From: Adineta vaga
Lineage: Eukaryota > Animalia > Rotifera
Length of the DNA stretch: 64,000 nt
NCBI GenBank assembly: GCA_021613535.1
Contig: CP075493.1
Span: forward strand, 1 to 64,000
Reading direction: 5' to 3'
Under the pieces are notes generated by a model. The model had not been told where the DNA came from. It did not search any database and saw only the letters and a program-made list of their open reading frames with translations. Positions 1-56,673 of the stretch are shown in pieces. Position numbers and translations under genes: made by a program. Position 1 is the first letter of the stretch; the number at the start of each line of letters is the position of its first letter.

Positions 1-1274
1 TGATAATCTATTATTTTCCAATGTTGGATTATAAACAAATGTTAACATGAAATCAAATTTAGCCATTTCATATGATTGTTCTAATGATACTTCTTCTAAT
101 TTTGTATTATTCATCGATAAGTAAGTTTCACTTTCGGACAAAGTGATAAAATCGAACATTGTTTCCAAAAAGCTAAGATTAGATTGATTGAGATGAAAGT
201 CACTGAGAATATGTTGAAGTGGATAATGAGAATGTTCAAGTATTGATAAACACATCTCTCTTACAGAGTGAACAACTTCATCAAATGACCAATCTCCATT
301 GAGCTGAACACGATATGGTAATGTTGCCACAAACATTCCTATCATATTATACAATTCAGATCGATATCGATTGGCATTTATAGTACCAACACACAAATCA
401 GTTTGATTATGAGATAATTTGAATAGAAATACATAAAATATCGATAGTCCAAGTTGAAACAGTGAAAGATGATGTGATGATGCATAATTTAGAAATGATG
501 TACATATAGCATCATCTAATGTTATTTGAGTTCTAGAAGCGAAGCCAGATCGTTGGTGAATTGATGAACGTGATCGATCATATGGTAATGATAATGAATG
601 TTGAAGATCACACCCTTGAAGCTGAGAATACCAAAATTCATGAGATAATGTCATATCCATGACATGTTCATGAATAGAATAATCAACATATTGAAATGAG
701 TTGTTTTCGACAAAAAGTGAATCATTATCTTGATAAGCAAGAGAAAGATCACGAATAAAGATTGATGTTGATGCGCCATCGAAGAAAGCATGATGAATAG
801 TAAATAATATAAAATCATCTGTAGTCAACATATCATCTTCTTCCTTTGAACTGTGCGTATGAGAGCGAAGAATATGACAATTAATGACATGTCCTTTTGA
901 TAAATCAAATAAATCACATTTATTTAAGATTTCTCTGACAGTTTTATTCTTATCATGGTTTTCTTTGGAAACATTCGTCACTATTGAAAAACCAAATGTT
1001 TCGATATTATTGCTTAGAGTATTCATATCTCGACAGTCTTGTACAATAACACCATTTCGATCAAAATAAAGTGCTGTTCGAAGAATCTGATGTTTTCTAA
1101 TGATACATTGATATGCATGATATAATCGTGAAATTGAAATATGATGGTCATTTATCGATGATAGACGATATATTAATGGAATAACATACATATTTGTACT
1201 GTTATCTGTCGAAGAAGAAGAAAATCGAATATTTTCATCTAAGAAAATGCGTTCTTGAGCAAAGGATGCTTTAG
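1..1274 (-). CDS. NRPS exon 10: condensation domain with canonical HHAFFDG, truncated by the window edge
   Basis: Manual translation AKASFAQERIFLDE...IHHAFFDGAS...NMIGMFVATLPYR...MAKFDF. Open to position 1, so it is absent from the ORF track. Confidence 0.9.
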
Positions 1275-4200
1275 CTGAAATGAAAAAAGTAGAATGTGAT
1301 TATGCGAATGTTTTTCAAATTATACTTGTTACCTGTAAGGATATTTAATGAATGCCAAGAATGATCATCTTTACTCAATTCGGTATTGAGAATCTGATGA
1401 ATAAGTTGTGCATGATCAGTGATGGTTGGATGTTGAAATAGGTCAGTGATAGAAATGGAATTTATTTCTAACCGAAATTCTACTTTATAGTGATGCAGAA
1501 GTTGCATAATAATTAATGAATGACCACCAATAGAGAATATGTTTGTATTAGTAGATATTTGATTTCGTTTCAATATATCACACCATATACGATGAATAAT
1601 AGATTCAATTTCATTTGTTGGTTCTAAGAATTCGATAGTATTGTTGAGTTTAGTTGAAGAGAGAGAAATAGAATCAGGTGATGGGAGAGATTTTCGATCA
1701 ATTTTTCCATTTTGATTTAGAGGTAATTTATCAAGAATAATAAAATGGGATGGAATCATATGTGGTGGAAGATGGGATTGACAATATTCACGTAATTCTT
1801 TTTCACTAACGACTGAACTTTGAACATAAGCGACTAAATGATCTTCACCCCATTTCACCACAACACAAGTAGATACCGATGTGATACTAAGTAAGCATCG
1901 TTCAATTTCACCAAGTTCAATTCTTTGTCCGTGTAATTTGACCTGAAAGTCTTTTCTTCCTTCATATCGAACAAGGTTATTCTGATCTATCTTGACAAGA
2001 TCACCAGTTCGATAAAATAAAATATCATCGACATAAATTATTGCTTTCGATGTTAAATCGTCACGTCCAAGATAACCAGCAAAGACGCCTACTCCTCCAA
2101 CAAGTAGCTCTCCTTCTTGATTTATTAATACACTTTGCAGGTATTGATCCAGAACTAAATTTCGATAGTTTGGAATTGGTCGACCTATAGGAATATTTTC
2201 ATTATCTATATGGTGTTCCAGTAGGTAAGTAGTGGCATCAATGGTTGCCTCCGCGGGGCCATATAAATTCCATATGTTGCACTTTGATATGCCGATATTT
2301 ACAATGGAACGCGTTAGTTTGCCATTGAATGGTTCTCCTGTTTAAATATAAAGTTAAGTCGGATAAGATATGCGAAAAGACAAGTATAGCAGAACAGTTA
2401 GCGATACGTCTGTAAATTTCTCTAACAGAATTACAGACTGTTTATAAATGGAAGTGACGTATATACTGTCGTATTGTCAAATTATGCGATCCGGTGAGTA
2501 TTTATCGATTCATTCTGAGTCGTACACCCAATTTTATTGTGACACCAGAGAAAAAATATTTACGATCAAAATATCGAATGAAAGAATTTGGACTGAAAAA
2601 TTCCGGCAATGAAACTATCAAAATGATCATGAAATCGAGAATATAATTATCGAAAACGGGAAGATCGAAAATTGGACGGTGTGGAGAAGTCGAATATGTA
2701 TTCTAGATTTGTCGAAAGTCAAAACTTCTACAGTGTACTAGTTTATAACTTTCGTATTAATCTTGCAGATGGATGTCGGGGATTGTGGAGACAGCTGAAC
2801 TGACTTCATCAACACTTCACAGTCTCTCCCAACACTCCCATTTCGCTCTTAACCTCGAAAATTCATGAGTTTTTCCTTTTTAAGTTGAAAATGAAATATT
2901 TCAAAGTAGTCTCTTGCACTTTACCAATGTTTCTTCCATTTCGACATTCAAGTTCTTAGACACTGTATGTTCCCATTATTAGCTATTCGACATTTTTTCT
3001 TTGCGACATTTTAACTTTCCACCCGAATCCTGATTAACCGTTTAACCGTTTACTATAACAATACGGCTACAGCTGTGACCAAATACTGACTCTACCGCTT
3101 TTCCTAATTACTTATTCACTAACTAACTCACCGCTGCTGCAAAGTGACCGAAGATATTTTACAAAATGGCCCGCGTTACATTTGTTGATGAAAGTGAAGA
3201 AGTGAAACAGCAAACTTGGAACAGTGTGCATGTATGTTATTTGTTTGTTGTATAGCACTTCGGACAAATAGTCAAAATCAATAGTTCCTCGTGGATGCAC
3301 CATAATTAATGTGGCACCCTTTGATAAAATACCAAGTATCTCTTGAACATGAATATCGAATGAACATCGTGCCATTTGTATAGCTGTATCACCTTCGTTG
3401 AATGAATTTATGAACGTCAAAGAATGCATACATTCATTGAAATTTCCATGACGAATTTGAGCCTATAGAGGAAAAGAGAAAGATTAATTCAACAACAAGA
3501 CACAAGCAACAACGAACCGCTTTTGGTACTCCAGTTGAACCACTAGTGAAAATAATGTATGCAATATTCTCTGGTGTTACTATCACGTTCGACAATTGAT
3601 CAAAGCCAGTATTATTTTGAATGTCATTATTAGTTAATATTAAATCAACATTCACTACGATATTTTCGTCATGTATCTTGTTCTTTGTTAACCAATGAGC
3701 AAGAACAAGATGACTATTAGTTTGCTCAACAAGTGTATGTAGACGATGTGGTGGATCTCGAGGTGATAATGGACAATATGCACCACCTACCATTTCAATT
3801 GCCATTATACCAATAACCTAAAATAAACAACAATTCGTCATTAATACCAAGAGACATTCTTCTCATTCATCTACTTACCATTGATATACTTCTCTCCACA
3901 CATTGACAAACAATATCACCAACTTTTACATCATATTTGTTCAGTAAAGTCAAAGATAATACTTGAACATAATATAACAGCTCACAATTTGTCAACGATT
4001 GTTCATCTAATTCTACAGCTAACTTTTGTGAATATATCATTGCTTTAGAAACAAACTCATGATGAATACATTTGACAGCAGGAGATGATATTTGTGTATT
4101 ATTCATTGATTGTACAAGTAATTGTTCATTGGGTAATATTAATGAGAATTCATAGAGTGGTTTCTTCGCTTGACTATGAATAGATGTTGACAACTGACAC

Positions 4201-7200
4201 AACATTGAATGAAATTGGTGTGAAATCTTATTCACAGTTTCTACATGAAACAGATCACGTGACGCATCAATTGTACATGAAAGTTGATTAAGATCCAAAG
4301 TATGATGAAAAGTGAGAATAAAATCAAATTTACTCATGATTTCATCTTCACTAATCTGAATCCAAAATGGTGCTGAACTTAATTCACTATCACCAAGCAT
4401 TATTTTATCTTGATCGTCATTTGTCATCGATGTTGTAAACTCGAATGATGTATGAAGAAATGCCGGATTTGATAGGTGAGGATGTTGTGCAAGAATACGT
4501 TGAAGTGGAAAATATGAATATTTCATACTATTTGTAATCAAGACTTGCATTTGTCGAGTGAATTGATGGAAAGATGAATGAGGATCAAGCTGACATCGAA
4601 GAGGAATAGCATTGACAAACATTCCAATTATTGATCTAAATTCATCTCGATAACGTCCATCTGTATTCATTCCAATGCATAGATCTTGTTCTCCATTGGT
4701 TAATTTGAATAAGAAGATGAAATAAGTCATGAGTGACATATATTCAAGTGATATGTTATTTGTCGATGCATATGTGAGAAAGTATTGTGAAAGATCTTGT
4801 CCAAAGTCAAACGAAATAGATGTTCCACGACCAGTTCGATGTTCACTTGCAAGACGATATCGATCATAGGGTAATGATAGAGGTTGATCGAGTGGACAAT
4901 CATAAAGAGTATTAGACCAATACATTTCTGCACCAGTCATTGACATTTGTTGTTCAATGACAGCATCTAAACAAGATAGATGATCAATGTTTTTTGAAAA
5001 GAGAAGAAACGAGAGAAAAATGTATATTTACAATCGATATAGCGTAGAGTACTGTTGTCTTGATCAATAGATAGATGACTTGTTGTATAGGCTTGATTGA
5101 GATCATGAAGAAAGATATTCATTGATCGAAAATCAAATAAAGCATGATGAAAATTAAAGATAAGTAGATCTTTATGAGAAAGAAGATCATTCGATGAGAT
5201 GATCTCCTTGTAATGTATAAGATGACATCGAAAAACAAGACCTTGAGCCAGATCAAAATATTGAGTATTTTTTCGTTCATCCTGCATTATATTGTTAAGT
5301 TGTTCATCTGTTTCATAGCTACTTTGAGTAAATGAGAACATTGTTTTGTTGTTGCGATGCTTTTGAGATGTAATTCGTTGGATGAGTTGATTGTTTTGTG
5401 TATCGAAGATGAGTGATGTATGAAGTGATGGATGTTTGTTAACAACAAGTCGAAGTGCATGATGAAGTTGTTTTATTGATAAAGTATGTTGTGCATGAAG
5501 ACGATAAACAAATGGTAGATTACTAATGAGTACTGCTTGTTGTTTGTTGAGGTCGATAGATCGTTTGTGATCAAGATAAAGACATGTTTGTGCAGATGAT
5601 GCTGGTCCTATGACATTTAGAAAGTAGTTTATTATCATGATTTGCAGAATAACAGTCAGTTGCTCTCTCATTATATGCTACTTACAGTACTTCTCCCTAA
5701 TAACGACACTAAAATGAAACTTTATTTTTGTTTTTATTCGCGTTCATCTATTTTACGACCGATTTCAAACAACTTTATATTTGGGGAATCTTTGGATGAC
5801 GCTCTTTCGAATGATATATTTCCGATCCATTTTCTCATATGTTTTCATGGAGATATCACCGGTCTACGATTGTGATGTCTTGGTGTCGTTATAACGTTCT
5901 ACTTCCGTAATAGAGACACTCAGCTATTTTTTTACCCTAATAACGACACATCCTTAATAAAAGTTGATAGATTCTTCAGCAACTATAACGAGGAGCAACA
6001 TGGTGATGAAAATCGGCTTATTGTCGTTATTAGGGTCCAAAAACTCTTCGAGAATCTCTAGAACGAAAAATAGCTAGAATTGCTACAACGGCCAAATCAG
6101 CTGACTGTCGTTATTAGGGAGAAAAAATAGTTCGGTGTCGTTATTAGGGTCACCTATTTTTTCCATTGATCCGAGATGATTTTTGTTGATATTAGGATTC
6201 TCATATGGCATGAGTCAATCGACCTGAACCGTTAGATATAGGTAGAACTTGAGACGCTCTTCAAAGTTGACTAAGGAATCTACCCTAAATTTCAGAGTAA
6301 AAATCGTCCAAAACACTTTTTTCTGAGAAGAATTCGCTTTTAGCATAAATTTTGCTTGATTGTCGTTATTACGGAAGTAGAACGTAATAACGACACCAAG
6401 ACATCACAATCGTAGACCGGTGATATCTCCATGAAAACATATGAGAAAATGGATCGGAAATATATCATTCGAAAGAGCGTCATCCAAAGATTCCCCAAAT
6501 ATAAAGTTGTTTGAAATCGGCCGTAAAATAGATGAACGCGAATAAAAACAAAATAAAGTTTCATTTTAGTGTCGTTATTAGGGAGAAGTACTGTAGTTCA
6601 TTTGATCAATGTACTAACTGCAGACGCATGTTAATTGTTTTCAATTTGACCAAACTCGATAAAACATTAGGGCTTTCTGTATGAGACTGTTAAAATTACT
6701 CAGAGGTTTGTAAAAATACAAACGATATCTGTGGAATATTGTCAGCAGCTAATATAGTTATGCTTCATGAGTATAAAATCACTCTGTAGAATCAAGGATT
6801 TCAACTTTGTTCATCACAGTTTATGTCGAACGGTTCACAGGAATACAATGATCATCATTGGAAGAAAGCAAAGAAAATTCTTTAGATTCTGCGCGAGGCA
6901 AGGAGCTTCAAAACGGGAAAATCGAAGTAAACATACTATCTTGAACTGTGTTTCTTAATGAATGCACGATGGAAGACAAAAAAAGACAATTTTCGTCTTT
7001 TGGTTTGTTTCTTTGCTAATTATTTGCGTTGAGTATACTGAGTGATGAGAGAAGGAAGAGCGGGCTGTATAGGCAATGCGTGTTGGGGCTCTAGAGTTTA
7101 TTGACAGGTTACTGACAGATCATTCGAGAAAGTGAGACGAGTTCGTTTTGACACTGACGTATCTCCAAGCAAAAATTTTTATAGTTAACGTCCTTTTAAC

Positions 7201-10200
7201 GTAGAGATATTGAGGCTGCGTAGTGTGCTCTGGGTATATTTGTATTTATTCAGTATCGGACTGGAATATAAATGTTTCAGATCTATTAGAAGCTCATTAT
7301 ATTTTCATTAGAAAGAACATTCAACTCCGCATCAACCCATACAAAAGCTGTTTTTTCTGAACGCACTACAATCAGAGATTGGACGAGTACAAATACAGCA
7401 AGTAAAAGTACAAATACTTTTTACTTAGGTTGTGTACTTAGTACAGGTACTAAGTACCATGTTGTACTAAGTACATGTACTAATGAGAGAAGATCTTCAA
7501 CAGTTCAATCGCTTTTGAGTTGATTTTTCGGCTATAGGTTGAGAGGTGGGTATCACGAGTCCAGAATAATTTTAGAAAGATTTGAGCCGCTAGGCCTTTG
7601 GGATCGAGTTATGAGGTTTTTAGTGCATTTTTGACTATTTATTCAATATTGATGGAAAAGTCAAATAACGGAGTTTTGATCTGAAATTTTGTCCTTAGAT
7701 GGGTCTATTCATCATCAAAATATTATGAAATTTTCAGCTGAAAAAATGTTCCTTGGTCGAGGTACTGGGTTACTAAAACATAATCATTTATCGCCGATTA
7801 AACGCAAAATTCAAGTTTACTTGAAAATCCAATATCTCGACCAAGGAACATTTTTCAGCTGAAAATTTCAGATCAAAACTCCGTTATTTGACTTTTCCAT
7901 CAATATTGAATAAATAGTCAAAAATGCACTAAAAACCTCATAACTCGATCCCAAAGGCCTAGCGGCTCAAATCTTTCTAAAATTATTCTGGACTCGTGAT
8001 ACCCACCTCTCAACCTATAGCCGAAAAATCAACTCAAAAGCGATTGAACTGTTGAAGATCTTCTCTCATTAGTACATGTACTTAGTACAACATGGTACTT
8101 AGTACCTGTACTAAGTACACAACCTAAGTAAAAAGTATATGTACTTGTAATGCATAAATGTACTATTTACTGAGGTTTTTTAAGTACAAAGTACGAAAAG
8201 TACCAAGTTCTGTACTACGTATCCAATCACTGACTACAATAGGGTTATCAGAGGATACGAAGTTTATAGAGCAAGACTACTCTTCATGATATCTAACACC
8301 GATTAGATCTTTTTTCGATCATTTGTCCGTGCGAATCATTCGAATTTACTAGATTGATTCATCTGTTTTTGCTCATTTTCTTTAGCTACGTGTATTCCTA
8401 TAAGACTGCAGTAAAGTTTTATTTTTATGTGGTTGGATAGTGCATTGACTATTCTGTCGAACTATATAGTTTTAATTTGATTGGCTTCTTATTTTGGTCA
8501 AAAAATTCATAAATTTCTGAAATTATTGAGAAATTATTTTTGTAAGCTGATATTTGATTTAAAGTAAAACCGACTGTTTCGAAAATAGTATTAAAGTAAA
8601 GATATTGCTGAAACTGAAAGTTAGGGAAACTATCTTCTAAAACGGTCCTGAATTTGAATAGAAAATCAAATTTTACTGTTGAAGTTTTCAACATTTTTGA
8701 ATCATCATGTATTTTGGTCCTTTATAATCAATACAAAAGAAAAACTGAATCAATGTATATATTTCTCGAATTTGAGCGAGAATATGCATTTTTCCTCGGA
8801 AACCTAACTCTGCTTCGCCTCGTAGATAGCTCCAAAAATGAAACATTCAAAATCTGATTTTGCTGATTACTTAGTTGGTATATTGAATGCATATTTCATT
8901 TTGAAGGTCAAAAGTTTGCTTTTGTTCCAGCGAAAGTGATATTTTCAATGGGTTTCATTGATGGACACATCCTCTAAGAGAAGCAGAGTGAAATTTAGTG
9001 GAAAAATAAAAGTTCTTGGTAGGGCCCAGTGGAAGTGCGATTTTTGTTCCGATCCGATCATGTTTCGGCGGAAGGAACCCGCCCGGACCTCGATCCGCTT
9101 TCTAAAAGGGAAACCCTTTCTAACTCCGTCTACTACCATTTTTTCTAAATTTTCAGGCAACGATTTTCCAGCACATGTATCGCATTAAACAGTATTCGAT
9201 ACAATTCCGCTAGTGTTATGATTTGTCAGTGGAAAGCTCATATCAAAACTTGTATACTAAAGTTCGAATTTGATTCAGTTAGATGCCATATCAGATTAAT
9301 CTGGGAAATATGAGAGGATGGGTGTGGGTGGGGGTAGATGTGAGTGTGAGTGAGGGCGTGAGTGTGAGTGAGGGCGTAAGTGTGAGTGTGATTGTGGGCG
9401 ATTTCTCAATGTAAGGCACACCACACCCACACCCACCCACGCTTACACCAAGCGAATACTACCAAAATCAACATGTATGTACATACCTTCATTAACAACG
9501 TCTGATTGTCGAGAAAATACAATATTTTTCATTTCTTCGGTTTCATTTGGTAGAATAAGATCGATTTTCGCAATAGGTGTCAGGCATGTATCAATCTGGC
9601 TAGTAATCGAATTTGATGAAAAAAGATGCTGAACAAGATATTGTAGTCGACGAGCCATCGTCTCAACTGTTGTCTCATCAAATCGATCGCGTGAGCAGAC
9701 AAAACGACATGACAATGGAGCATCATCTGATGTTGAATTGTAAATGAATGTTAGCTTAAAATCAAACTTAGCCATTTCACGAGATTGTTTCATTGTTACT
9801 TGTCCCAAATGTACACCATTGAAAGCCAAATGATCGATGTCTGAAGATACAGTTATAAAATCAAACATTATATCAAGAAATGAAGCATTCGATTGATTGA
9901 CATGAAAGTCAGCGAGAATATGCTGTAATGGATAATGAGAGTGCTCAAGAATTGATAAACGGTTTTCTTGAACATGTTTAACAAGTTCATCAAATGAACA
10001 ATGTGGATTAAGCTGGAGACGATACGGCAACGTGGAAACAAACATTCCAATCATATTCTGCAACTCACTTCGATATCGATTAGCATCGAGACACGAAATA
10101 CATAAATCAGTTCGACCATAAGTCAATTGGAATAGAAATGTGTAAAATATAGCTAATCCTGAAAGGAATGGTGTAACTTGATGTGACGATGCGTAATCGA

Positions 10201-13200
10201 GAAATAATCTTGAAATCTCTTTCTCCAATGAGATTTCAGCAATAGAAGCTAAACCTGATCGTCGCTCAGTAGATAAACGATGTCGATCAACTGGCAATAG
10301 TAATGACCGTTTGAGATTATATCCTTTCAGCTGCGAGTGCCAAAACTTACGAGATGATGTCATATCTATTAGACGTTCATGAACAGCATAATCAATATAA
10401 TCCAATGACGCTTCAACTGTCGACATTAGTGTATTATTGTTATAAGCAACGCATAGTTCTTTACAAAAGATTTCAGCAGATAACCAATCACATGCTGAAT
10501 GATGAAAAGCGATTATGAGAATATCTGATTTGACGATTAACTGACTATCTCGATTTTGACTGCCTAACTTTTGTTGTCGTAATACTTCACAATGGAAAAC
10601 ACGACCACTCGACAAATCAAACAAACTAGGATTGACTGCCATTTCATTAATAATATCGAAAAGTTCAGAGTCATTTTTATAATTTCGGTGGTCAACCAAT
10701 AGCGATCTTTGATGATTGTTAGTAATGTGTTGTTTTAAAGTATTGCCATTGTAGTCATAAATCAACGATGTTCGTAATATCTTGTGTTTACTTAAAAGAG
10801 ATTGAAGCGCACGTGACAGACGATCAACTGATAATGAACCTTGAACAATTCGTAGAGCACTTAGTTCATTATAGATACCGACTTTCCTTGAAAAGCGAAC
10901 TTCTTCATCAACAAAGATGCGCTCTTGACCGAATGACGCAGTGCCTAAACGTTTCACAAAACAAAATTTCATCATCGAAGAGAAATCTATTCCAAAATAG
11001 CTCACCTTCACTCAAATATAATTTTCTCCATTGTTTCTTTTCTTTGTTATATACAACAACTGTCTGAAGCAGTTTCGCGTGTTCAGCCACAGTATTGTAT
11101 TGAAAAAATGAGCGCATTGATAAAACTTCATTGTCAAAATTAAAAAGCGCTTGATATTCTCGATATAAATAAATGAGTAAAAGAGAATTACCCCCCGCAC
11201 TAAAGAAGCTAGTAGCAGCTGATATGCGAGGAAATAGTTCTGTATCTAATTGCCACAATTCCGAAGAGCAAATACCAGTCGAAGATATTTCATTGCAAGC
11301 GATCCCCGTCGCCTGCTTCGATCCGTCTGACTTCGACTGAATATAATACGCACCAGGTCGGTTTGTATTCAACAAACCACGCCAAATGTCCGCAATTGTC
11401 TTTTCTAGTTCAGTAGTTGGTGCTATATATGTATCTTCTTTCTGAAGATCGAATGTCGATATTTCTGGTAAAGATTTCCGATCGATTTTCCCATTTGGAC
11501 TCAATGGAAATGTTGAAAGAGTCATAAAATATGATGGTATCATATAACTTGGGAGATTTTCTCTTAAGTATGTCCTGAGTGTGTCAATATAATCTGGTGT
11601 CGATTTCACAGTCGAAATAGCTCGTTCATATTTTTGTTCATCACGAATCTTTCCCATGAACATTATATGCAATAACATGTTCCCTTTGTTCGATCCACAA
11701 TAAGTGAGTATGTTATCTAATGTCTTATTAATTTTCACTGGTAAATTTGTACGAGTACCAATTGGACACATACCAATATTCATTTCTAAACCACCATCCA
11801 TTAATAAATGCGATGTCATACCAGCTTGTAATCCGTGCTCAGATTGTCCAATATAGAAGATTGCGCATTGACAATCATTGAAAATAATTTTAGTATCGTC
11901 ATGATCACCCAAAAATAGTGGAACATCTTCTTTTATTACATCTAATTCTATATCGAAAGAGATAAGAGTACTATCTTTTTTGTCATAGATAAACCATTGA
12001 TCTTTGTTATAGTCAACAGATTTCAGATAAACAATATATTGAAGATAGTCACTATCATTAGCAATGTCTTGTTGAACAGATGAAATTGTAAAACAATGAT
12101 GAGTATCGTTCTCATCTAAGTTGATAATATGTCCATCTATCTCTTCATTATGCATAAATCTTGAAAATATGAATCCCAATTTAGATGCTTCTTGTTGAAG
12201 TAATCCCATCATATATCCTGTTTCAATTATACAAAATTGACAACCTAATGTTTTCCCATATAGAGGTGCAATGGCTGATGATCGTCCAACAAGATGTAAT
12301 CTTATACCAAGATTCTCATCATGAACACAATTATCGATTAATTCGAGAGTATGTGTGTCCGGATTATGATAATAGATACCAGGAGAAATATCATCTATTG
12401 ATGTATGAAGCTCAATATATACTTGAACAGGATAAAGACTTCCTGCTGATGCATAGCGATATTTTGGCAAGGGATGATTGTAAATATTAATTGGTGTCAA
12501 TATCGATAATAACTGACTAAGATTATCGAAATTGAAGCTTTGCAGAAATCTTTGGTTGACATTTTTCTTGGTCAGACAACATTTGTTCAACAAATGTTCA
12601 ATAGTAGACTTTTCAATGATTTCATTTGTAAACTGTCGATAACTTTTTCTTGCATAATATGTATTAATGAATGTTTCTGTTAGTTTTGGTTTCGTGAGTG
12701 CATAGCTCTTTTTGACTTCATAGTCGTGTTGTATTCCATGTCTAGCAAGTTTAAAATTAGTACGTTCAATAGGATCCGTAATTGAAATTTCTGCTTCATT
12801 ATAATCATCATTAATGACAGAATGTTTTTCTGGCATAATATATCCAATCAAGTATTGTGATGACTTATCAACAGTAACAATTGCTTGATGAATGTCAGAA
12901 TGTTGTTGTAGATGGTATTCGATTTCACCAAGTTCAATACGATGACCATGAATTTTGACTTGAAAATCTTTTCGTCCGATGAACTCAATGTATCCATCTG
13001 GATGAAATCGACCATAATCACCTGTTCGATAAAGACGCTGACCATTCTGTGGATGAATAATAAAACTTGATCGTGTTTTCTCTTCGTCGTTCCAGTAACC
13101 ATCAGCAACACCTATGCCACCAATGTATAGCTCACCATCAACCCATTCAGGACAATCATCAAGATTTGTATCATAAACATAATATTGTTGATTTCTTAAG

Positions 13201-16200
13201 GGCATTCCATAAGGAATTGATTTCCATTCTTGCGGTATTTCTTTTGGTAAAGTAAAAGCAATTGACCAAATCGATGCTTCGGTTGCACCACCTAGACTAG
13301 TTATTGTTACTTCTTCACCAAATATTGTTTGTATTGATTTTGGTAAAGATAATGGTATCCAATCACCACTTAATAAAACATGCCGTAATTGATTATAATT
13401 AGAAGTATGTTGTAAATGTTCAACTAACATTTGCATCAACATTGGAACACTATTCCAAATGGTAACATGATGTTGAACCATCATATCATACCAATGTTGA
13501 GGATTTCTATAATGTTCATGATCTGGAATAACAATAGTTCCACCAGCGATTAACATTCCAAATATATCATAAACAGATAAATCAAAATTTAGATGAGACA
13601 ATGCAAATATTCGATCATTTGAAGTGAGATTTAACCTAGTATTGATATCAAGAATAGTATTGAGAACAGCTTGATGACTAATCATAACACCTTTTGGTTT
13701 TCCAGTTGAACCAGATGTATAAATCACGTATGCCAAATCAGTCAACTGTTGTTGTCGTATTGGAAAGGGCTTTGGATAGTCGTCAAATGTGAATGTATCA
13801 ACTGGAATAGTTACCAAATGTGGAATTGCGTGATGACAATGAGATTGTGTTAGGATAATTTTTACATTCGTTTCTTCAATTAGTGCACAAAGTCGATCCT
13901 GTGGAGAATCAATATCCAATGGTAAATATGCAGCACCTGCAACCAAGATAGCTAAACAAGCAACAACTTGTTCCCAACCTTTTCTCATGAGAATAGCAAT
14001 GAGTTGGTTTGGTTGTCCTCCTTGTTGCTGTAAATGATAAGCCAATGAATAAACACGATTCATTAGTTGTTTATATGTTAAAGATTCAGTGGATGAAAGA
14101 ATAGCCCAAGCGTCAGGTGTTTGATAAGCTTGGTCTGCGATCAGTGAACGAATTCGGGGAAGCTCGATGTTCAAAGGGTGATTGGTTTGATTGAAAAGCA
14201 GTCGTCGTTCTTGATGATCAATTGGAAGAACAGAGGTAAGAGGCTGCAGCCAAGTATGATCTAATGTTGCTAAGTCGACTATGATGTTAATAAAAACGTT
14301 ATGCATATCGTTTATCAGGCCGGAAGGAAATAGAGCATCTATATAATCCCATTCAATCACTAAGTGGCCCATATCATCTTCATAAACTCGATTGTCTAGG
14401 TACACTTGAGGTGTTTGTGATACAGCATATGTTGGTTCGTCGGGGAAAATAGTTTGAATACCAGAACTAGAAGTTCGTCGGATGCCATCTTTTACATCGA
14501 TTCCACAGGTGAATACTATCGGGAAAAGAATTTGTCGACTAGCGCGTATATGCATGACTTTATTGATAAATGTGACAGTACTATACAACACATGATCAAG
14601 ATCTTCCCAAAGCTGCATTTGAACCGTTCGAATTTGATCGATGATAGCAATTGGCGTTCCAGTTTCAGTGTTGATCTCGAGTAAAATGATTGACGTAAAA
14701 TCACCCAGTATGTTATTAATATGGTGATGAATTGGTAATCGGTTGAAAAACGGCATATTGAGTGTGAAGTGATGGTTTTTACTCCACTTACTCAATACAA
14801 GTGCAAAAATAGTTGCTAAAAAGCCAGCAGAAGATATTTCATACTGTCGTATTTTAAGCTTTAACTTGTGCCACGTTTGGTCATCTAGTGTCCCTGAGAT
14901 ACGGACAAATTGTTGACTTTCTATATCATTTGGCAGACTTTTCAGTGGAAGATCTGGTCCAGAAGGAAACGACGAGAGACGACTTAGCCAATATTCTTCG
15001 TCATTTCTGTATGCAGACGTGTTTTGAATTTCTTTTTCTGCTAGAACATAGTCACGAAATGATAACGTTGGCGTTGGCAAAGTAATACTTTCATTTTCAT
15101 AAAGAAATAGTAGTTCTTGCCACATTATATTGTAGCTAAACCAATCAAAAATGAGGATATCGAAACCAAGATGCAACCTGAAGTCACGGTCAGTCCATTG
15201 CGTGATCTGAATGTCAAATAATGGCCATTTACTAGCAGGTAAAATTTGATGAGATAATAATCGTCGTCGTCTCTCTAGCTCCTCATATATATCCACTACA
15301 GGCTGCTTCCTGATATCAATAATAGGAATTTTATAGTATGGTACGTGTTCGAGAATTTGCTGTTCACTCTCTGACGGAAACACAAGTCTTAATGCTTCAT
15401 GGCGCTGAATCAAACGATTGAATGTTCGTTCAAAACGCTCAATATCAATTGGAGGAGAATCATATTCAACATAGCCGAAACCAGATACATCGCTTAGTTG
15501 GATGAAACCACTGCGCCCGATCAGATACATTTGCTGAATGTCTCGCAACGGAAAAGGTTTATACCGATGCATTTCGTCGGTTGTCACGCTAATCGCTACT
15601 TTGTCTATGTTCGAATGACTTTGTTTTATTCGCTCATTTTTGCACCGGTACACTAGAGAACTTAGCACTGGGTTTCTATAAAATATATGTAACGGTAAAT
15701 TAATCTTTAAGATTTGCTCAATTTGAGATTTTAGACGAATAACGAATAAAGAATTGCCACCAAGTTCGAAAAAATTGTCCGTCAAGCTTATTCGATCTCT
15801 ATCGAATAATACTTGCCAAATGTCCGCAATTGTCTTTTCTAGTTCAGTAGTTGGTGCTATATATGTATCTTCTTTCTGAAGATCGAATGTCGATATTTCT
15901 GGTAAAGATTTCCGATCGATTTTCCCATTTGGACTCAATGGAAATGTTGAAAGAGTCATAAAATATGATGGTATCATATAACTTGGGAGATTTTCTCTTA
16001 AGTATGTCCTGAGTGTGTCAATATAATCTGGTGTCGATTTCACAGTCGAAATAGCTCGTTCATATTTTTGTTCATCACGAATCTTTCCCATGAACATTAT
16101 ATGCAATAACATGTTCCCTTTGTTCGATCCACAATAAGTGAGTATGTTATCTAATGTCTTATTAATTTTCACTGGTAAATTTGTACGAGTACCAATTGGA

Positions 16201-32965: not shown

Positions 32966-32983
32966 TTCCGCAAGTAATAGGTA

Positions 32984-39656: not shown

Positions 39657-39657
39657 T

Positions 39658-50387: not shown

Positions 50388-52288
50388 TCATACTTTGTTT
50401 GGACGTTTTGGCATCGATATAAAGATGAGCCATTTTTCACTCATTGCCTCTCTTTTTGTTCTATTCTGACTAGTGTGTTCAATTAGTATCTGGTTTTTAA
50501 TAATCATTGACTTTTATTGCTTGCTTTTTCTTGCTATTTTGCAGTATGTTCGTCATGAGAATTGGATTGGTGCGAGTGGTGTCACATATCCCACAGATCG
50601 GGGATGCACCCCAACTCTCGAAACTAACTCGACTGATGGCAAGTCGCTTGATCTATATATATTACATAAATGTTTGCCGAAGATGTCCACAGTTTCTTAG
50701 TAAAGATTTTATTATTAGAAAAAATTCAATTCTTTTGGTTTCTTAGAAACATTGGTTCTCTGCACTTTTTATTTCAGAGACTCAAGATAGAACGAAACCT
50801 TTTCTCATCAAGCAATAGTACATGAGATTAACTATAAACATCATCGGAAGTTTTGCGATTTTATCAATCATTGAGCTTTTCTGCGTATCTAAATAATTAT
50901 TCTCACAATGGAAAAGAGTGAATAGTTAAGCTGATATCCACTGTATAGAGATTATTCACTACAGAGGGATTGAAGAAAAGTGTCTACAGTCCAGAATGTA
51001 CAGGTGTCCATTTTAGAGAGATGTTCACATAAGGAGGTTTTGCTGTATCTCCGCTGTGTTTCAAATACAAATACAGAAGATAATAAAGCAGAACTAAAGA
51101 ATAATAGCGTATATATTACTGGTGACAGATTTTGATATGATCTGTCTTAGAACTTTCCAGGTCATGCTGTTCAAATATACCAGAAGAAAACCAAAATCAT
51201 TATGCATGAAGAAAGTAATTATTTTAGCAGCCAATATACATAAAGAAAATCCTTTGTTGGATTTCTTCATATTTTTGTAGACATTAGTATTTTGTTTACA
51301 GTAAAATGTTTACCGATAAAACTTTAGCCATCTATAGCACATAAACTCTAGTTTCTAGCATATTTTGAATGGAAAGTTTTCAAATATCACTCATATTCAG
51401 GACATAAAGTACCGAATTCGAAACATAAAGTTAAATCATCCGAAAAAGTTGAAAGAAACTGAATTTTATAGTGTTACTGATCGTTTATGAAGATAATAAT
51501 AAAACTTTTCGGCCATAACTAGTTTTACTATGAAGAGATATCATTTAGATTGTATAGACTACACATAATAATATACTGGTAGCTCTCTTAAAATAATGTC
51601 GAAAAGGTGCTCAGAATAAAAGGAGAATATATTAATACACTGGTTTTTATTTAAACAAGCGGATTTGAAATACATGTGTGAGAAATAGATGTTTGTGTGA
51701 TTGCTGTGATTATTGATGCATTAATCGCTTTTCTTTCACCATAACAAGAGAAAATTATCAACCCGCCATATTGATAAATCATTATACGCCGTTTGTAGTT
51801 ATTCACATAGGTTATAAGAGAGCAGTGCGGAGCTTACTTATCTTTGCAGTGACAAACTGGACCAAAAGAATAATAACGTTTGTGAGTTAAATCCATCATA
51901 GTTATCATTAAAGCTACCAAAATTCTGTGCTTAAGTGAGGGTACGGATGCTAATTACAAGCCCGTATCTGTGAAGCAGAGTGAATTTATAGAAGTACTGG
52001 AATAGTCGCTTTGGTCTCGAATATTTTTCGATTTTTTTCTATGAGATGAGCCAACATGAATCAATTGAGTAGTACAGGATCTTCCACGATGGTGGCCTTT
52101 ACTAAACCCAGCTACTCTAAATAGAGTGCATAACTTGTTTATTCGATTGATTTGTGTAAAAGAATCATTGGAAATTACAATGGTTCGGAACCTATACTGA
52201 TACGCAATTAAAAAATCTTTGAATGAAATAGTTGTGTTTTTAGCTTTAATTGCTATTAATACCTAATCGACAATCGATTTGAATTCCT

Positions 52289-55200
52289 ATGGAAAAGAAA
52301 ACAATCATACTATATGGTGACCGTCTCACATTAGATGATTTGGTGTCCATCGCTCGCTGTCGTAGTGCCGTTCAGTTGACTGACAATGAGAATATAAAAA
52401 ATCGTATGAACAGATCAATAGATATTATACAAAATATTGTGAAAAATAACTTGCCATTGTATGGTGTCACTACTAGCTTCGGTGGTCTTGCAAAAAATAC
52501 TATCTCGGGGCAATATGCGGATGAACTGCAAAGCAACCTCATTTTAGCATTGAACATGGGCGCCGGTCCGACTTTACCTCTTGAAACTATTAGAGCTGCA
52601 ATGGTTTTACGCGCTAATGCACATTTAATTGGAGCATCAGCTATTCGTCGAATATGGGATGAACGTCTGATTTTATTCTTGACTAAGAATGTGACTCCAT
52701 TAGTGCCTGAATTCGGATCAATAGGAGCATCAGGTGATCTCGTTCCTATGTCATATATTGCGGCGGCTCTTGGTGGCAACGATAATCGAATCCTTGTCGA
52801 TTTTGATGGTAAAACTATGAGTGCGCCAGATGCTTTAACTATATTAAATATTGAATCGCTAACATTTGTACCAAAAGAAGGATTAGCCATGGTGAATGGC
52901 ACAAGTGTCATGGCTGGTTCTGCAGCTCTTGTTACTTACGATTTTGCAAAATTATTTGCCGCTACTCTTCACGTTCATGCTATTGCTATTCAAGCACTTG
53001 TCGGTGGCAATCAATCTTTTCATCCATTTGTGCACCATGTCAAACCTCATCCTGGACAAGTAAATAAGATATTATCTTTTTTTGCACCTCCCGTCATTTA
53101 AGATTAGAAATCACAACAAATTAATCTTATAAAGCGAAAACGTTCTGCTGTAGATTAGTAGAATAGTAAAATGTAATCTAGATTTTGTTTAGAGCGGTCT
53201 GATTATCGCAAATTTTAATGATGTTACATTTTGCTAATTACTGTCTGCTCATTTTTCAAAACGAAAAGACTGTTGTATATTCTAGATTCAGCTAGATTCT
53301 TGTTCTTTCAGCCGTTTGTTGGAGCTGATGTAAGAATAGAAAATCATAATACGATTCCGTAGACACTTTAGTGTTTTCGAAACGAAGATAATGTTTGATT
53401 ACAGATGCTGGAAGTCATTGGTTACAATAACCCCAAAATGGTGGTATACGGTTACTCAATATGCCGGATATCTTTGTGTAACCAAAATCGTGACCGAGCA
53501 CAAACTGTAGAGTATCTGTTTGATAGACGTGATATTAGGGCTATATGCAACACTATCGTATATGAATCATATCTGAAACTAAACCGGCTGAGTTTCGTCG
53601 GTCTTTTACCGGTGTTTTAAAGTTTTCAGCCACTGAACTTTACGTACTTTAACCCTTTTTAAGAATTTCCATTGCATTACTAGACAGCAAATATAGTCCT
53701 AAAAGTTTTCCATTAATAAGATTCAATTGTAGTTGAGAACTGTAGCTCTAAATGTTTTATTTATCCTTTTATTAGAGGCTCATATCAGATCGAATGAATA
53801 TATTATAGTCAAAAGTCAGCCAACTTTTATTAGAGAATGTCAATTGAAACTGAAAGCTTTTCATCGAGGATGTCCGGCAGGATAGGGGGAGGGTTACCTA
53901 CCTTAAGTATTGGAAAATTTTGTTGGTTTCGTTCGTTAATTTTTGAAATGTTTACAAGAAGTTTTAAAAATTGGCAATATCCGCTTCCCAATATTTTCAA
54001 TTTCGGGAAACCGCTATTTTCACCGTAAAAAATATTGGAGCCATCCGTATGCAGGAGTTTTAGCTAACTTTTACAGAACTTGGACAGCTATCAATATTCA
54101 GGGTATACTTTCATAGTGGAATATTTTAAAAATGTTATCTTTATTGTCGAAATCTTTGTGACTTATAGCATTATATAACCCTAATAATATTTGATATTCA
54201 CAAATTCTAATTAAAAAATCTAATATAAAAACCTCACATATTAGTTCACCTTTTCTTTCTCGATATAATTCATTGCACAGCAGATACGACTAACTCATAG
54301 ATTATGTGCTCAGTCGCAATCACGAATTTCGATAAAATTTGACTCATGTGTAACTTTAAGGGAGATAAAAAAATGCCTGAAGTTTCATCTTCTAAAACCC
54401 TTCTATCGTTGAGATATAAGAACAGCGGTGGAGGTATTCTAGGAACAAAAATTAAGAGGAAATGACAGTAATCATAGCAGCACGCGTACATTGTATACTG
54501 CGCCATTCTTCAGCAAACGATTTTAGTCATGAATTTTTCCTAGTGTATATTATTGTCGACGCTCTGCATACTGACACAATCAAAATCCTTTTCGACGTAC
54601 TAAGCGATACAGAAGTACTTAATAGATTCTAGATATAGTGCTCTATACAATTCTATCTTGTGAGATACTGTTTGATTAAAAGTCGGGAGCCTTTTAACGA
54701 AAGCAATAATCACTTGCTGAGAACGGGAAAAAAGTAAAAGAGGTGTTTGGAATTTGTGAAGAAATGTTCTAGTTTCTTTCGTGTCTGTGCAAAGACCTAT
54801 CTTAAAAGGCTCAAATTTTGGATGTAGGATTTTTTATAGGCTCTTCCATGTTCGATAATAAAATGAACACGCCAAAAGTTTTCGTGTTACTAGATGTTTT
54901 TAGCGAGCCATGGATTGTCTGTCAACTTAAAAGTATTAATATGAATTCGTATGTTATAACCAAAATTAACCGTTGCATTTGGTTCAACAAAAACGAACCA
55001 AATCCTACCTTTAGTTTCTTGTGGTTGGAGAAAAAAACTAACACTTATGTTTTATTGACAGGTTGATATAGCTAGTATTATGCTTGATCTTCTCGACGGC
55101 TCCAAACTTATCAGCGACAACCTTGACGCTAATCTAACGCAGGAAAACGTGGATCGGCTCATTCAAGATCGATATTCTATTCGATGTTTACCGCAATTTT

Positions 55201-56673
55201 TAGGTCCCATGCTAGAAACACTACGTGATGTTACTCGAACACTTGAAATTGAAATGAATTCGGCTAATGATAATCCTCTGGTTGATGTTAGTACATCCAA
55301 AGTATATCGTGAGTATAAACTCGGTATAGATACAGAATGTTTCAAAAAGTCTGCTCGAATTGAACAATTGTAACAAACACTAGAGAATATTTATATAAAT
55401 ATGACTTTGAAAAACGCTCGACAAAACGAGTAGCCGGATATTCGCCAATAGGACTTTCGCTATTGGCGAACGTCCACTAATCTTTCGCCAATATACCTTC
55501 TCTACTTTCGCCAATTGACGAAAGTCTATTAAAATTGCGCTAGTATTGGCGAAATTCTATTAATCTTTCATTTATATGGTTATAAATTTGGTATCGAGTA
55601 AAGATATCATCGTTTGTTAGATTCTACTGCACATATGTTAGTACGTTTTAATAATGTCACTCAACTTTTGCCAATATTGGCGAAAGTTCATAGGATTCTT
55701 GTCAGTTTATGTTGGGACATTCGCCAACTGGCGAAAGTTTACAGATTTACGTGATCAATTATCAACATATTATAAAACGCATGAAGCAGCCTGAGTCAGA
55801 TGGTTCAAAAAGTGATATCAAAAGGCGGTGGGGATATCGATGTACCAATAGATGCGTAGAGTTTCAGATGTATCCATGACTTATTTTGAAGGCAGAAAGT
55901 CTTATTAACAAAGAGCTGATATCAGTTGAGAGTCAATGATATCATGATTCGCTGCCAATTATAGCCATGTAGGTAACTTCTTGGGAGAACTCTTACGTAT
56001 GATGTCGATGGATCGTCTTCGTCAATCCATAGGTTTAATGGCTAAACATTTGGATGTTCAAATAGCTCAATTAGTTACACCTGAATTTAGCAACGGTCTT
56101 CCTTCGTGTCTTATTGGCAATCAAGATCGTCCAGTTAATATGGGACTGAAAGGACTGCAGTTGTGTGGAAATTCGATAATGCCATATTTACTGTTTCTTG
56201 GTCAACCAATGGCCGATAGATTTGCTACTCATGCTGAACAATATAATCAGAACGTAAATTCTATGGGACTTACATGTGCCCAACTCGCTCGTCAATCGGT
56301 AAATGTCATGAATCAATATATCGCCGTTTGTCTTCTATTTGTCGCTCAAGCAGTTGATTTACGTGGTAAAATTCATTTTAACACTTATGATCCACGTTTG
56401 TATCTTTCGACCTCCACGGTGCAAACGTACGAAGCTGTTCGAACCATCGTTCAGGCTGAGATTGATTCGTCACGTCCGTACTTATGGGATGATGGTGACC
56501 GTGCAGTAGACAAAGATATTGCTAAACTTGCTGGTTCGTTGGTGGACGAAAATTCACCTCTGGTTGCAGCTTTACATTCTACCGTTAAACAACTTCGTCA
56601 TTCCAAAATAAAACCTGACTCTTCTCTAACCAAAATATGCGATTACGGGAGTAATACGACAAACGGATCTTAG
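52289..56673 (+). CDS. pal: MIO-dependent aromatic amino acid ammonia-lyase, cyanobacterial PAL type (3 exons, about 572 aa; exon 3 acceptor uncertain)
   Basis: Exons 52289-53059, 55062-55308, about 55973-56673. Catalytic YGVTTSFGG, MIO-forming GSIGASGDLVP (ASG at 52727-52735), KEGLAMVNGTS, QSFHPFVH..KPHPGQ, IQDRYSIRCLPQ, NDNPL, AKHLDVQIA, FSNGLP, VNMGLKGLQLCGNSIMP, HAEQYNQNVNS. From memory these are colinear with Anabaena/Nostoc PAL. Confidence 0.9.
55436..55740. mobile_element. Repeat-rich element in PAL intron 2 (TTCGCCAAT/ATTGGCGAA motifs)
   Basis: About seven copies of the motif in both orientations. Confidence 0.55.

Follow-up and report, generated by a model that had tools for sequence, protein, structure and literature searches.

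A candidate ammonia-lyase-primed bithiazole NRPS pathway in a subtelomere of Adineta vaga chromosome 1

Two candidate pathway genes in a subtelomeric window

The window analysed here, 64,000 nucleotides long, is the left end of chromosome 1 of Adineta vaga Av20 (Chrom_1:1-64000), and at slightly below even odds (about 0.45) we read two of its genes as a host-encoded pathway in which a nonribosomal peptide synthetase (NRPS) takes up the acid made by an ammonia-lyase through its starter adenylation domain (A1) and builds a bithiazole on it, with a neighbouring ACSF2-type ligase uninvolved. The first-pass annotation had placed three genes here, and all three, an NRPS (22451 to 1, minus strand), an AMP-binding ligase (42340-40448) and a Lyase_aromatic gene (52289-56673), are real and lie where it put them. 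Its argument for residence in a eukaryotic genome, with introns in each gene, was likewise borne out by the NCBI models (four introns in the NRPS and two in the ligase, GT..AG-compatible after shifts of 1-2 nt under greedy exon mapping, two of six ends excepted) and by spliced lyase contigs. The features along the window are as follows.

1..22451, minus strand: NRPS (Pfam and NCBIfam domain maps, exon map, predicted C3-C4 splice, Nowell region 1.1)
34578..39470, minus strand: Helitron (Helitron_like_N and PIF1 ORFs)
40448..42340, minus strand: ACSF2-family acyl-CoA ligase of 599 aa, I4U23_000005 (introns of 47 and 49 nt separate its three exons)
52244..56800, plus strand: MIO-type aromatic amino-acid ammonia-lyase, I4U23_000006 (under-annotated)
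52289-53059, 55062-55308 and ~55967-55973 to 56673, plus strand: coding exons of the lyase

A distance of 30 kb separates the NRPS start from the lyase, and the two genes diverge on opposite strands, with the Helitron, repeats and the ligase between them. By gene numbering, no further non-transposon genes are called in the first 57 kb: the numbers I4U23_000002, _000005 and _000006 leave space for just two more genes, presumably the Helitron ORFs, which fit these places. The Helitron, whose other copies are ~80% identical, is outside the pathway.

The NRPS locus has already been catalogued: Nowell et al. 2024 (PMC11258130, Supplementary Data 9) number it 1.1 among the biosynthetic clusters, with the entry Chrom_1 region 1..40179, minus strand, "3'-incomplete", an estimated length of 5604 aa and the additional domains 'Cyc_NRPS; Nitro_FMN'. 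This region stops at 40179, so that the ligase and the lyase both fall outside it, and a product prediction for cluster 1.1, thiazoles and ammonia-lyase are all absent from that paper (PMC11258130). The lyase family, too, is already represented for A. vaga in UniRef, by B3G4D2, named 'histidine ammonia-lyase-like'. The earlier statement that no animal example had been described was therefore too strong; what is new is the evidence for a lyase-to-NRPS link, namely bacterial gene fusions, an adjacency in A. steineri and a second copy in A. vaga.

An NRPS predicted to form two thiazole rings

The NRPS domains run in the order A1-T-Cy-A-Ox-T-Cy-A-Ox-T-C3-C4-A4-T-C5, and the whole is probably a single gene that NCBI divides into I4U23_000001 and I4U23_000002. 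Its parts, all on the minus strand, are listed from the starter onwards.

20330..22451, minus strand: starter adenylation domain A1 (translation, motifs; best NCBIfam match TIGR01733, NRPS A domain)
22451-22023, 21966-21325, then from ~20750, minus strand: the three A1 exons
20073..20255, minus strand: carrier domain T1 (PP-binding match)
18705..19883, minus strand: heterocyclization domain Cy1 (motif DLLILDLWS)
15870..18569, minus strand: A2 (Cys code DLYNLSLIWK), with Ox inserted at ~16110-17222 (TIGR03605, BmdC oxidase)
15651..15833, minus strand: carrier domain T2 (domain map)
14265..15455, minus strand: heterocyclization domain Cy2 (motif DILIFDWFS)
11436..14138, minus strand: A3 (Cys) with Ox insert (domain map, motifs)
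11070..11228, minus strand: carrier domain T3 (domain map)
9487..10942, minus strand: condensation domain C3 (motif HHSACD)
5608..9486, minus strand: predicted C3-C4 intron, 3879 nt, GT..AG, phase 1
3870..5607, minus strand: condensation domain C4 (two frames, short intron)
1274..3817, minus strand: A4 (several exons; motif-read code D-I-Q-H-C-S-L-I-D-K)
~1403-1597, minus strand: carrier domain T4 (follows A4)
1..1299, minus strand: condensation domain C5 (cut by the contig end)

The claim that two Cys modules with Cy and Ox domains follow the starter stands on three features. Both Cy domains have DxxxxD in place of the condensation motif HHxxxDG (at residues 404 and 1877 in the open frame of 3293 aa), and the best solved relatives of Cy1 are Cy domains (EpoB 250 bits, Irp2 236, BmdB 213-216, HMWP2 177, PchE 154). 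The Cys code was read in both modules from NFDLSVYD, TIWNSVP, LLSGD, SLGGATEASIW and GKIDRK, with positions assigned by motif and not by structural alignment. Before A10, between the A core and NGKIDRK, lies a nitroreductase/SagB-like insert (RKSYRQF and YASAGSLYP); the Ox inserts resemble the BmdC oxidase (E=4e-8) and the SagB family, and score 27 bits with PF00881 and 46 bits with TIGR03605, the latter under its 78-bit cutoff. From two complete Cy-A(Cys)-Ox-T modules, followed by C-C-A-T-C, two thiazole rings would be expected in the product, and the bithiazole assignment holds as a prediction at this level.

The modules of EpoB, BmdB/BmdC and bleomycin likewise pair a DxxxxD Cy domain and a Cys-activating A domain with an FMN oxidase, and the bleomycin bithiazole is also made by two Cy/Ox modules in series. 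The A. vaga NRPS differs from them in its location on an animal chromosome, with spliceosomal introns in the flanking parts, and in an unusual C-C didomain after the thiazole modules. By the chemistry established for these systems, each Cys module would condense, cyclodehydrate and oxidise, and the product on T3 would be an N-acyl 2,4'-bithiazole, then extended by at least one amino acid. The NRPS is 36-45% identical to bacterial relatives and 50-65% identical to other bdelloid copies; within it, 11381-14117 and 15815-18551 share 98.6% DNA identity, and Cy2 is just 50% identical to Cy1.

The locus could also be a decaying one, in which the NRPS is truncated at the chromosome end, its modules are reshuffled, its introns are filled with transposons and the product is no longer made, a reading that we consider unlikely and that is compatible with the others discussed here. 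No stop closes the reading frame before base 1, where the contig end cuts the gene, and no thioesterase or terminal domain was found up to that point, as the published label "3'-incomplete" also conveys; the predicted 3.9-kb C3-C4 intron is filled with repeats (inverted pairs 7403-7690/7862-8149 and 5683-5922/6357-6595), another intron of 574 nt has a palindrome, and cluster 1.1 is not among the two A. vaga clusters reported as fungus-induced by Nowell et al. (PMC11258130). Decay is, however, hard to square with an uninterrupted frame of 3293 codons, with catalytic motifs intact in every Cy, A, Ox, T and C domain read, with a predicted C3-C4 splice that keeps the reading phase and agrees with the A. 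steineri protein P0143, which likewise goes directly from C3 to C4, and with the entry for cluster 1.1, which has no frameshift or stop (Nowell et al., PMC11258130). The absent 3' end may be merely unassembled, and subtelomeric contigs may be missing from the assembly (Nowell et al., PMC11258130).

A starter domain without Asp235

The amino-binding Asp had been described as absent from the starter A domain, and our alignment agrees: A1 has Ile at the Asp235 position (SWIIHIYE, where other A domains have F-D-x-S), together with an FGMSE core and the motif-read code I-I-Y-L-W-A-F-T-A-K. A1 thus lacks the Asp235 contact to the alpha-amino group that characterizes amino-acid-activating A domains, and would load a carboxylic acid without an alpha-amino group. 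Among 62 A domains in 31 bdelloid NRPS proteins, a survey biased because the proteins were chosen for likeness to the Cy module, the Asp235-less 'SWI.H' type occurs in two, both of them starters, and Asp is present at position 235 in other bdelloid A domains (58/62).

A lyase on a PAL-type scaffold

The lyase is expressed and spliced, its intron 1 (53060-55061, GT..AG) being directly visible in spliced contigs from runs presumed to be RNA; intron 2 begins at 55309. The MIO triad Ala-Ser-Gly is kept (GSIGASGDLVP, at the MIO site in the alignment with 2NYF and 2NYN), the catalytic Tyr context is retained, and the three exons match PF00221 with 248, 76 and 78 bits. The best solved relatives of exon 1 are the PALs of Anabaena variabilis (2NYN) and Nostoc punctiforme (2NYF) at 252-253 bits, which have the ASG triad and a short bacterial-type architecture in common with the A. 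vaga enzyme; exon 3 carries the PAL-like HAEQYNQN, and the nearest non-bdelloid sequences are deltaproteobacterial, Omnitrophota and Acidobacteria proteins (46-50% identity).

The lyase differs from 2NYN and 2NYF in having three exons and in its substrate-switch dyad, which is Ala-Leu and not Phe-Leu (LILALN vs LIWFLK in NpPAL). In this family Phe-Leu denotes PAL, His-Leu TAL and Ser-His HAL; the orthologues of the lyase have Ser-Leu, Ser-His or Ala-His, and the bdelloid family mostly Ala-His or Ser-His. Of the PAL-type assignment, the scaffold is therefore upheld (Nostoc/Anabaena PAL 253 bits vs P. putida HAL 113) and the selectivity is not, and the suggested conversion of Phe to cinnamate becomes doubtful, because the dyad is Ala-Leu and contains His in relatives. 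A strict PAL was rejected on the missing Phe-Leu dyad, and a housekeeping HAL on the score difference and on the lack of both a Ser-His dyad and the many-exon animal structure; separate many-exon HAL copies are found on A. vaga Chrom_3, one translated copy of which has Ser-His (IVSHCAG). Judged from its comparative context, the lyase would remove ammonia from an aromatic amino acid and release an aryl-acrylic acid, either cinnamate or a urocanate- or coumarate-like one.

Evidence on the link between the lyase and the NRPS

In the proposed pathway, the acid made by the lyase would be the starter activated directly by A1; the pathway would consist of two host genes, and its ancestry would be bacterial. 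PAL-primed starters are known from bacteria, as with EncP/EncH (enterocin) and StlA/StlB (Photorhabdus stilbene), and McyG loads phenylpropanoid acids; the logic shared with these systems is that Phe is deaminated and the acid then activated as starter, whereas activation falls in them to a dedicated CoA ligase or to a PKS loading module, and in A. vaga the candidate is an Asp235-less NRPS-type A domain.

Of the seven scanned bacterial proteins nearest to the lyase, five carry a fused AMP-binding domain and a sixth a fused thioesterase. These lyase-adenylation fusions (P0248, a Lyase-A-PP-binding protein from an Acidobacteria MAG, and P0255, P0258, P0244 and P0242) rank with the nearest relatives of the lyase outside the bdelloids and join it physically to an acid-activating domain, in P0248 also to a carrier, although these added domains belong to the CoA-ligase type and are, at 20-27% identity to A1, unrelated to it. 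In A. steineri, on CAJNOM010000561.1 (locus L053), a lyase-family gene ends 220 bp upstream of a same-strand NRPS gene, the first A domain of which has Ile at 235 (SWILHFME) and is followed by T and then a C domain; the window C3 is 57% identical to the C domains of L053 and of another A. steineri locus, L054. The L053 lyase belongs to the clade of the A. vaga paralogues A and B, not with the window copy. Paralogue A itself is situated upstream of a stand-alone A domain in which position 235 is Thr, at a distance of 17 kb, and paralogue B has no A domain within ~35-40 kb.

It is also quite possible that the two genes are neighbours by chance in a subtelomere that collects foreign genes, the NRPS working, or having worked, alone with another non-amino starter (a fatty, keto or hydroxy acid) and the lyase having a role of its own, such as aromatic or histidine-like catabolism or free aryl-acrylate. 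In A. vaga the subtelomeres show an enrichment of foreign genes, and 27 of 40 NRP/PKS clusters are located there (Nowell supplement, PMC11258130); all three lyase copies fall in the initial 0.5 Mb of Chrom_1. In A. steineri the nearest homologue of the NRPS, P0143 (A1-T-Cy-A-Ox-T-C-C-A-T, with an ABC transporter nearby), has no lyase within 10 kb, the flank inspected across species; the Rotaria and Didymodactylos lyase loci have no A domain within the same distance, and other lyase neighbours are oxygenases (P450, FAD aromatic hydroxylase). Against coincidence stand the bacterial fusions, the 220-bp spacing in A. steineri, the second Asp235-less A domain by paralogue A and the rarity of such domains. 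On synteny, which the first-pass annotation proposed as a check, the loci differ: a lyase is paired with an Asp235-less A domain at L053 and near paralogue A, and such a pairing is missing at P0143, in Rotaria and Didymodactylos and at paralogue B. The idea of the first-pass annotation that the lyase feeds the starter gains from the fusions and from the loci L053 and paralogue A, and is weakened by the 30-kb distance, the opposite strands and the lyase-free P0143 locus. The two-gene pathway also has against it the Ala-Leu dyad, the missing 3' end of the NRPS and the fact that cluster 1.1 is not one of the fungus-induced clusters.

The ACSF2-type ligase as a probable bystander

The original proposal had included the ligase in a three-gene route, in which cinnamate from a PAL would be processed by the CoA ligase (e.g., to benzoyl-CoA) and would cap the bithiazole peptide of the NRPS. 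In its favour, gene calling gives no non-transposon genes but these three in the first 57 kb, and the AMP-binding domains fused to bacterial lyase relatives are CoA-ligase-like, at 29% identity to the window ligase, a level of generic likeness. We nevertheless regard this route as very improbable: an NRPS A domain requires the free acid and not a CoA ester, the lyase has no Phe-Leu dyad, and the ligase is of another family. Its best NCBIfam match is PRK12583 (fatty-acid CoA ligase family, 436 bits), among solved structures FadD5 comes first (168 bits; 4CL reaches 144, and benzoate ligases also score lower), and it is 71-74% identical to bdelloid proteins named ACSF2 in UniRef, on which grounds a 4-coumarate/cinnamate:CoA ligase was rejected. 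In A. ricciae and A. steineri its nearest relatives adjoin the housekeeping genes MCM4, BCKDK, DHHC and AMP deaminase, as does an A. vaga pair at Chrom_3 11.33 Mb, and none of the ligase paralogues is near another lyase. The caveat that the ligase might be a housekeeping enzyme was therefore well placed: it is probably a bystander, a duplicate of a housekeeping-type ACSF2 gene that nothing links to the pathway. Compared with metazoan and bdelloid ACSF2, a medium-chain acyl-CoA ligase, the window ligase stands apart from the conserved tandem pair by MCM4/BCKDK, as a dispersed copy in the subtelomere.

A predicted thiazole NRPS at the left end of Chrom_1

The window is the extreme left end of Chrom_1, an 18,146,847-bp contig (CP075493.1) of the Av20 assembly; the A. 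vaga genome examined comprises 100.8 Mb in six contigs. Base 1 already lies within a coding frame, that of the NRPS, and no telomeric repeats were seen at the window start. Exact protein matches linked the three genes under study to NCBI tags:

22451 to 1, minus strand: NRPS (I4U23_000002)
40448-42340, minus strand: ACSF2-type acyl-CoA ligase (I4U23_000005)
52244-56800, plus strand: MIO-type ammonia-lyase (I4U23_000006)

To our knowledge, no animals other than bdelloids carry bacterial-type NRPS/PKS clusters by the dozen, and no product has been assigned to any of these. The first-pass annotation knew of no described animal example. The locus is already published as cluster 1.1 (PMC11258130), and its gene family is published too: Supplementary Data 9 of Nowell et al. 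2024 enters the locus as minus-strand 'region1.1:1..40179', flagged '3'-incomplete' and 'Cyc_NRPS; Nitro_FMN', with a length of 5604 aa and a single Av13 gene model mapped to it. The two fungus-induced A. vaga annotations in that study map to clusters 3.4 and 5.2, not 1.1, and its main text makes no mention of thiazoles, heterocyclization or ammonia-lyases (PMC11258130). The new elements here are the reading of the chemistry and the repeated pairing of a lyase with a starter adenylation (A) domain that lacks Asp235.

Pfam, NCBIfam and motif reading gave the minus-strand domain order from 22451 as A1, T1, Cy1, A2 with an Ox insert, T2, Cy2, A3 with an Ox insert, T3, C3, C4, A4, T4 and C5 (T, carrier; Cy, heterocyclization; Ox, oxidase; C, condensation). 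The DxxxxD motif is present in both Cy1 and Cy2, and Cy1 scored 250 bits against the EpoB Cy domain and 213-236 bits against those of Irp2 and BmdB. The Ox inserts matched the BmdC thiazoline oxidase (E=4e-8) and scored 46 bits against the SagB-family model, which is under the model cutoff. A2 and A3 share the code DLYNLSLIWK (positions set by motif), which we take to be the usual Cys code. The two DxxxxD-bearing Cy domains, the two Cys-code A domains and the BmdC-like inserts together bear out the earlier proposal of a bithiazole-type NRPS, and the proposed starter without the amino-binding Asp was likewise found, with A1 reading SWIIHIYE at the place expected for Asp235. The motif-read code of A1 is I-I-Y-L-W-A-F-T-A-K. 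Its best model, the NRPS-type A-domain model TIGR01733, led us to reject a DhbE/EntE-type aryl-acid ligase, and kinship with the A domains fused to bacterial lyases was rejected at an identity of just 20-27%. If the enzyme is made, the domain order predicts with good probability a product with an acyl cap, two thiazoles and further residues; the locus thereby permits an unusually concrete prediction, namely two thiazoles behind an acyl cap that has no amino group.

The Cy/Ox part is a single 3293-codon frame without interruption, flanked in the NCBI NRPS model (P0121) by introns of about 56, 574, 61 and 63 nt. That model stops after C3. A candidate C3-C4 intron runs from 9486 to 5608 (3879 nt, GT..AG, phase 1) and joins '..DVVNE-G' to 'PASSAQ..', and the junction so predicted is the same as the direct C3-C4 junction in P0143, the closest A. 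steineri NRPS homologue. Because this phase-matched intron joins C3 to C4 as in P0143, the gap is read as an intron rather than a deletion, and the NRPS is probably one gene running past the contig end; loss of an A-T module between C3 and C4 was rejected, with zero A or T remnants found there. The direct C-C didomain (T-C3-C4-A; window 9487-10942 and 3870-5607) is common to A. vaga and A. steineri P0143 (contig positions 16961-21507), and could hold an inactive, epimerase-like or docking C domain. Within the gene, the two A-Ox parts (11381-14117 and 15815-18551) share 98.6% DNA identity over 2.7 kb while Cy1 and Cy2 are only 50% identical in protein, a disparity that suggests recent gene conversion or partial duplication. 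The NRPS introns hold near-perfect inverted repeats (7403-7690/7862-8149 and 5683-5922/6357-6595; 97.5-99.6%) and an 89% palindrome at 20903-21275, and pieces related to the intron repeats recur elsewhere on Chrom_1, near 201 kb and 493 kb.

The Cy-A(-Ox) modules are 59-65% identical to the window in A. steineri, 57% in A. ricciae, 50% in Rotaria and 59% in a UniRef-listed A. vaga NRPS, with bacterial relatives at 36-45%, and at least four further Cy loci are present in the A. vaga genome; by these identities, the modules are a bdelloid-wide family.

A PAL-like lyase with an unusual switch dyad

The lyase was searched exon by exon, and full-length relatives were reached through exon 1 in a protein-representative search. 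Exon 1 scored 252-253 bits against Nostoc/Anabaena PALs, 113 against P. putida HAL and 88 against a TAL; the ASG triad is kept, as is a PAL-like HAEQYNQN in exon 3. The switch dyad in the window copy is Ala-Leu. Dyads are Ser-Leu, Ser-His or Ala-His in the closest orthologues (68-76% identical, from metagenomes), Ala-His in A. steineri, Rotaria and the further A. vaga copies A (Chrom_1 234.5-246 kb) and B (Chrom_1 467-475 kb), and varied in bacterial relatives, including Phe-Leu, Gly-Leu and Ser-His; Phe-Leu is the dyad of PALs, His-Leu that of TALs and Ser-His that of HALs. The label 'PAL-type' therefore stands for the scaffold but not for the dyad: as the dyads vary among relatives and the window copy carries Ala-Leu, a PAL-like scaffold is what the matches indicate, and it does not fix the putative substrate. 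Cinnamate as the specific starter is accordingly no better than unlikely. Three many-exon lyase-family copies lie separately on Chrom_3, and the one translated carries Ser-His, so the window lyase is not the housekeeping histidase.

The introns claimed for the lyase are supported by spliced contigs (three runs, one 2024 study) that cover the lyase exons alone and join 53059 to 55062, skipping 2002 nt with GT..AG ends; they also join 55308 to the start of exon 3. The runs behind these contigs are only guessed to be RNA, which zero intron coverage fits. Over the first 31 nt of exon 3, contigs and window differ at 7 positions plus 3 nt in length, the contigs encoding HGGNFLGEHVAMS and the window ..VGNFLGELLRMMS; the remaining roughly 1.8 kb differs by one base and one 1-nt insertion. 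The differing stretch lies at window 55967-56000; on the window sequence, splicing to the AG at 55963-55964 would bring in an in-frame TAG, and the AG at 55971-55972 keeps the frame. The 31-nt difference could come from the other allele, from a tract of gene conversion or from an error in the assembly. One transcript contig (X1) carries 30 extra letters 5' of 52244 that are absent from the window there, which suggests an upstream 5' exon or leader.

Relatives were found in Rotaria (60-64% identity) and Didymodactylos (54-58%; compact genes, 562-582 aa), UniRef already holds the A. vaga 'histidine ammonia-lyase-like' B3G4D2, and the nearest non-bdelloid relatives are bacterial (46-50%); on this distribution, the lyase family is bdelloid-wide. 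A search of the rotifer PAL literature gave no relevant result. What the three A. vaga loci have in common is limited to the coding exons, 76-77% identical in DNA, and to scattered repeats; segmental duplication was therefore rejected. The three-exon layout is the same in all three copies, and their introns are very long (0.65-2 kb in the window, 3-5.7 kb in the paralogues); only short introns occur in an orthologue of 70-76% identity from a metagenome contig (L052 5468-7317) and in the Didymodactylos genes (L045 1306-3113).

Recurrent pairing of lyases with starter domains lacking Asp235

The acid product of an ammonia-lyase has no alpha-amino group, and an A domain without Asp235 is expected to accept such an acid. 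Asp235 is present in 58 of 62 A domains from 31 bdelloid NRPS proteins, a sample picked for likeness to the Cy module and therefore biased; Asp235-less domains are, within it, rare, and the SWI.H form was seen only in A1 of the window and A1 of P0143, both starters. Among the seven nearest multi-domain bacterial lyase relatives scanned, five are fused to AMP-binding domains, including one Lyase-A-PP-binding protein, and a sixth to a thioesterase. These fusions are a 'Rosetta-stone' link that would connect the lyase clade to acid activation.

Comparison across genomes cuts both ways for the proposed linkage. On A. steineri contig CAJNOM010000561.1, a lyase stands within a same-strand PKS/NRPS array, and an NRPS gene begins 220 bp after the lyase stop. 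The first A domain of that gene carries Ile (SWILHFME) at position 235; its core is 41% identical to window A1, 54% to P0143 A1 and 19-34% to ordinary A domains, and it is followed by T and then by a C domain 57% identical to window C3. In A. vaga, 17 kb downstream of paralogue A (minus strand, 246 to 234.5 kb) and on the same strand, an A domain stands alone and has Thr at 235 (QWTLHNFE). Against the pairing, the window lyase and NRPS are divergent and 30 kb apart, the DNA between them being occupied by a Helitron, the ligase and numerous small palindromic repeats, and the A. steineri lyase is orthologous to paralogues A/B, to which it is 78-81% identical, and not to the window copy. P0143 has the layout A1-T-Cy-A-Ox-T-C-C-A-T, as in the window NRPS, with an ABC transporter upstream and no lyase within 10 kb, and no A domain was found within 10 kb of the lyase in the Rotaria or Didymodactylos loci or within about 35-40 kb of paralogue B.

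Weighing both sides, we regard the link between lyase and A1 as a good lead, with a probability of about 0.45 on sequence grounds. A working two-enzyme route in the animal is a more doubtful proposition: the horizontally acquired MIO lyase would convert an aromatic amino acid to an aryl-acrylate, which would prime the Cy/Ox NRPS to give an aryl-acryloyl-bithiazole peptide. If true, a metazoan would for the first time have a thiazole natural-product pathway assigned to it, and the lyase with an Asp235-less starter would be a reusable loading cassette of several Adineta assembly lines. The recurring pairing offers a cheap entry point, in that an assay of one lyase and one A domain would give the starter identity and guide mass spectrometry. 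Were it shown, an animal would have retained foreign genes, or gathered them, as functional pairs of precursor supplier and assembly line.

Several other genes lie near the lyases and the P0143 NRPS. Next to paralogue A, an AMP-binding gene with long introns adjoins a mariner transposase (Chrom_1 221449-229106, locus L023, and 218485-219435, locus L022); the AMP-binding gene matched best to carboxylic acid reductase and FadD11, in their adenylation parts, with a weak match to AMP-binding_C_3, a C-terminal domain also fused to the bacterial lyases P0258 and P0242. An FAD-dependent aromatic-ring hydroxylase (Chrom_1 481326-482597) lies 6 kb from paralogue B, and a cytochrome P450 (L045 6359-7567) 3 kb from a Didymodactylos lyase; both may be aryl-acid tailoring partners. 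The transporter 4 kb upstream of P0143 is ABCB-type (positions 519-5873 of its contig) and recalls the transporter genes flanking induced clusters in Nowell et al. 2024 (PMC11258130).

The ligase and the surrounding repeats

A CoA ligase had been included in the proposed pathway, a role that gained no support from comparison with its relatives. Three exons make up the gene, separated by introns of 47 and 49 nt. Its best family match is PRK12583, for fatty-acid CoA ligases; among solved proteins, FadD5 and further fatty-acyl-CoA synthetases come closest and 4CL scores lower. In the source databases the bdelloid relatives are named ACSF2. Those nearest to it, 71-72% identical and found in A. ricciae and A. 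steineri, stand as a tandem pair next to MCM4, BCKDK, DHHC and AMP deaminase genes, the counterpart of an A. vaga pair at Chrom_3 11.33 Mb (74% identical to the window ligase). Similarity to its own paralogues is confined to the gene body, and none of these in A. vaga lies near any other lyase copy. By these comparisons the window ligase is a duplicated, dispersed member of a housekeeping-type family, and its membership in the pathway is highly improbable. Carriage by the Helitron was rejected: other copies of that element (Chrom_3 0.70 Mb, about 80% identical) stop near window 39470, without the ligase.

In the window Helitron (34578-38920), Helitron_like_N is spread over two frames that overlap and PIF1 has an ORF of its own; the element is probably degenerate. 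Short repeat families of about 200-470 bp occur at 25199-25394, 31046-31242, 45900-46373 and 39695-40048, of which the first three match on either strand, in the palindromic manner of MITEs or foldback elements; copies number from a dozen to dozens per family, mainly near chromosome ends. A short reverse-transcriptase fragment lies at 60146-60601.
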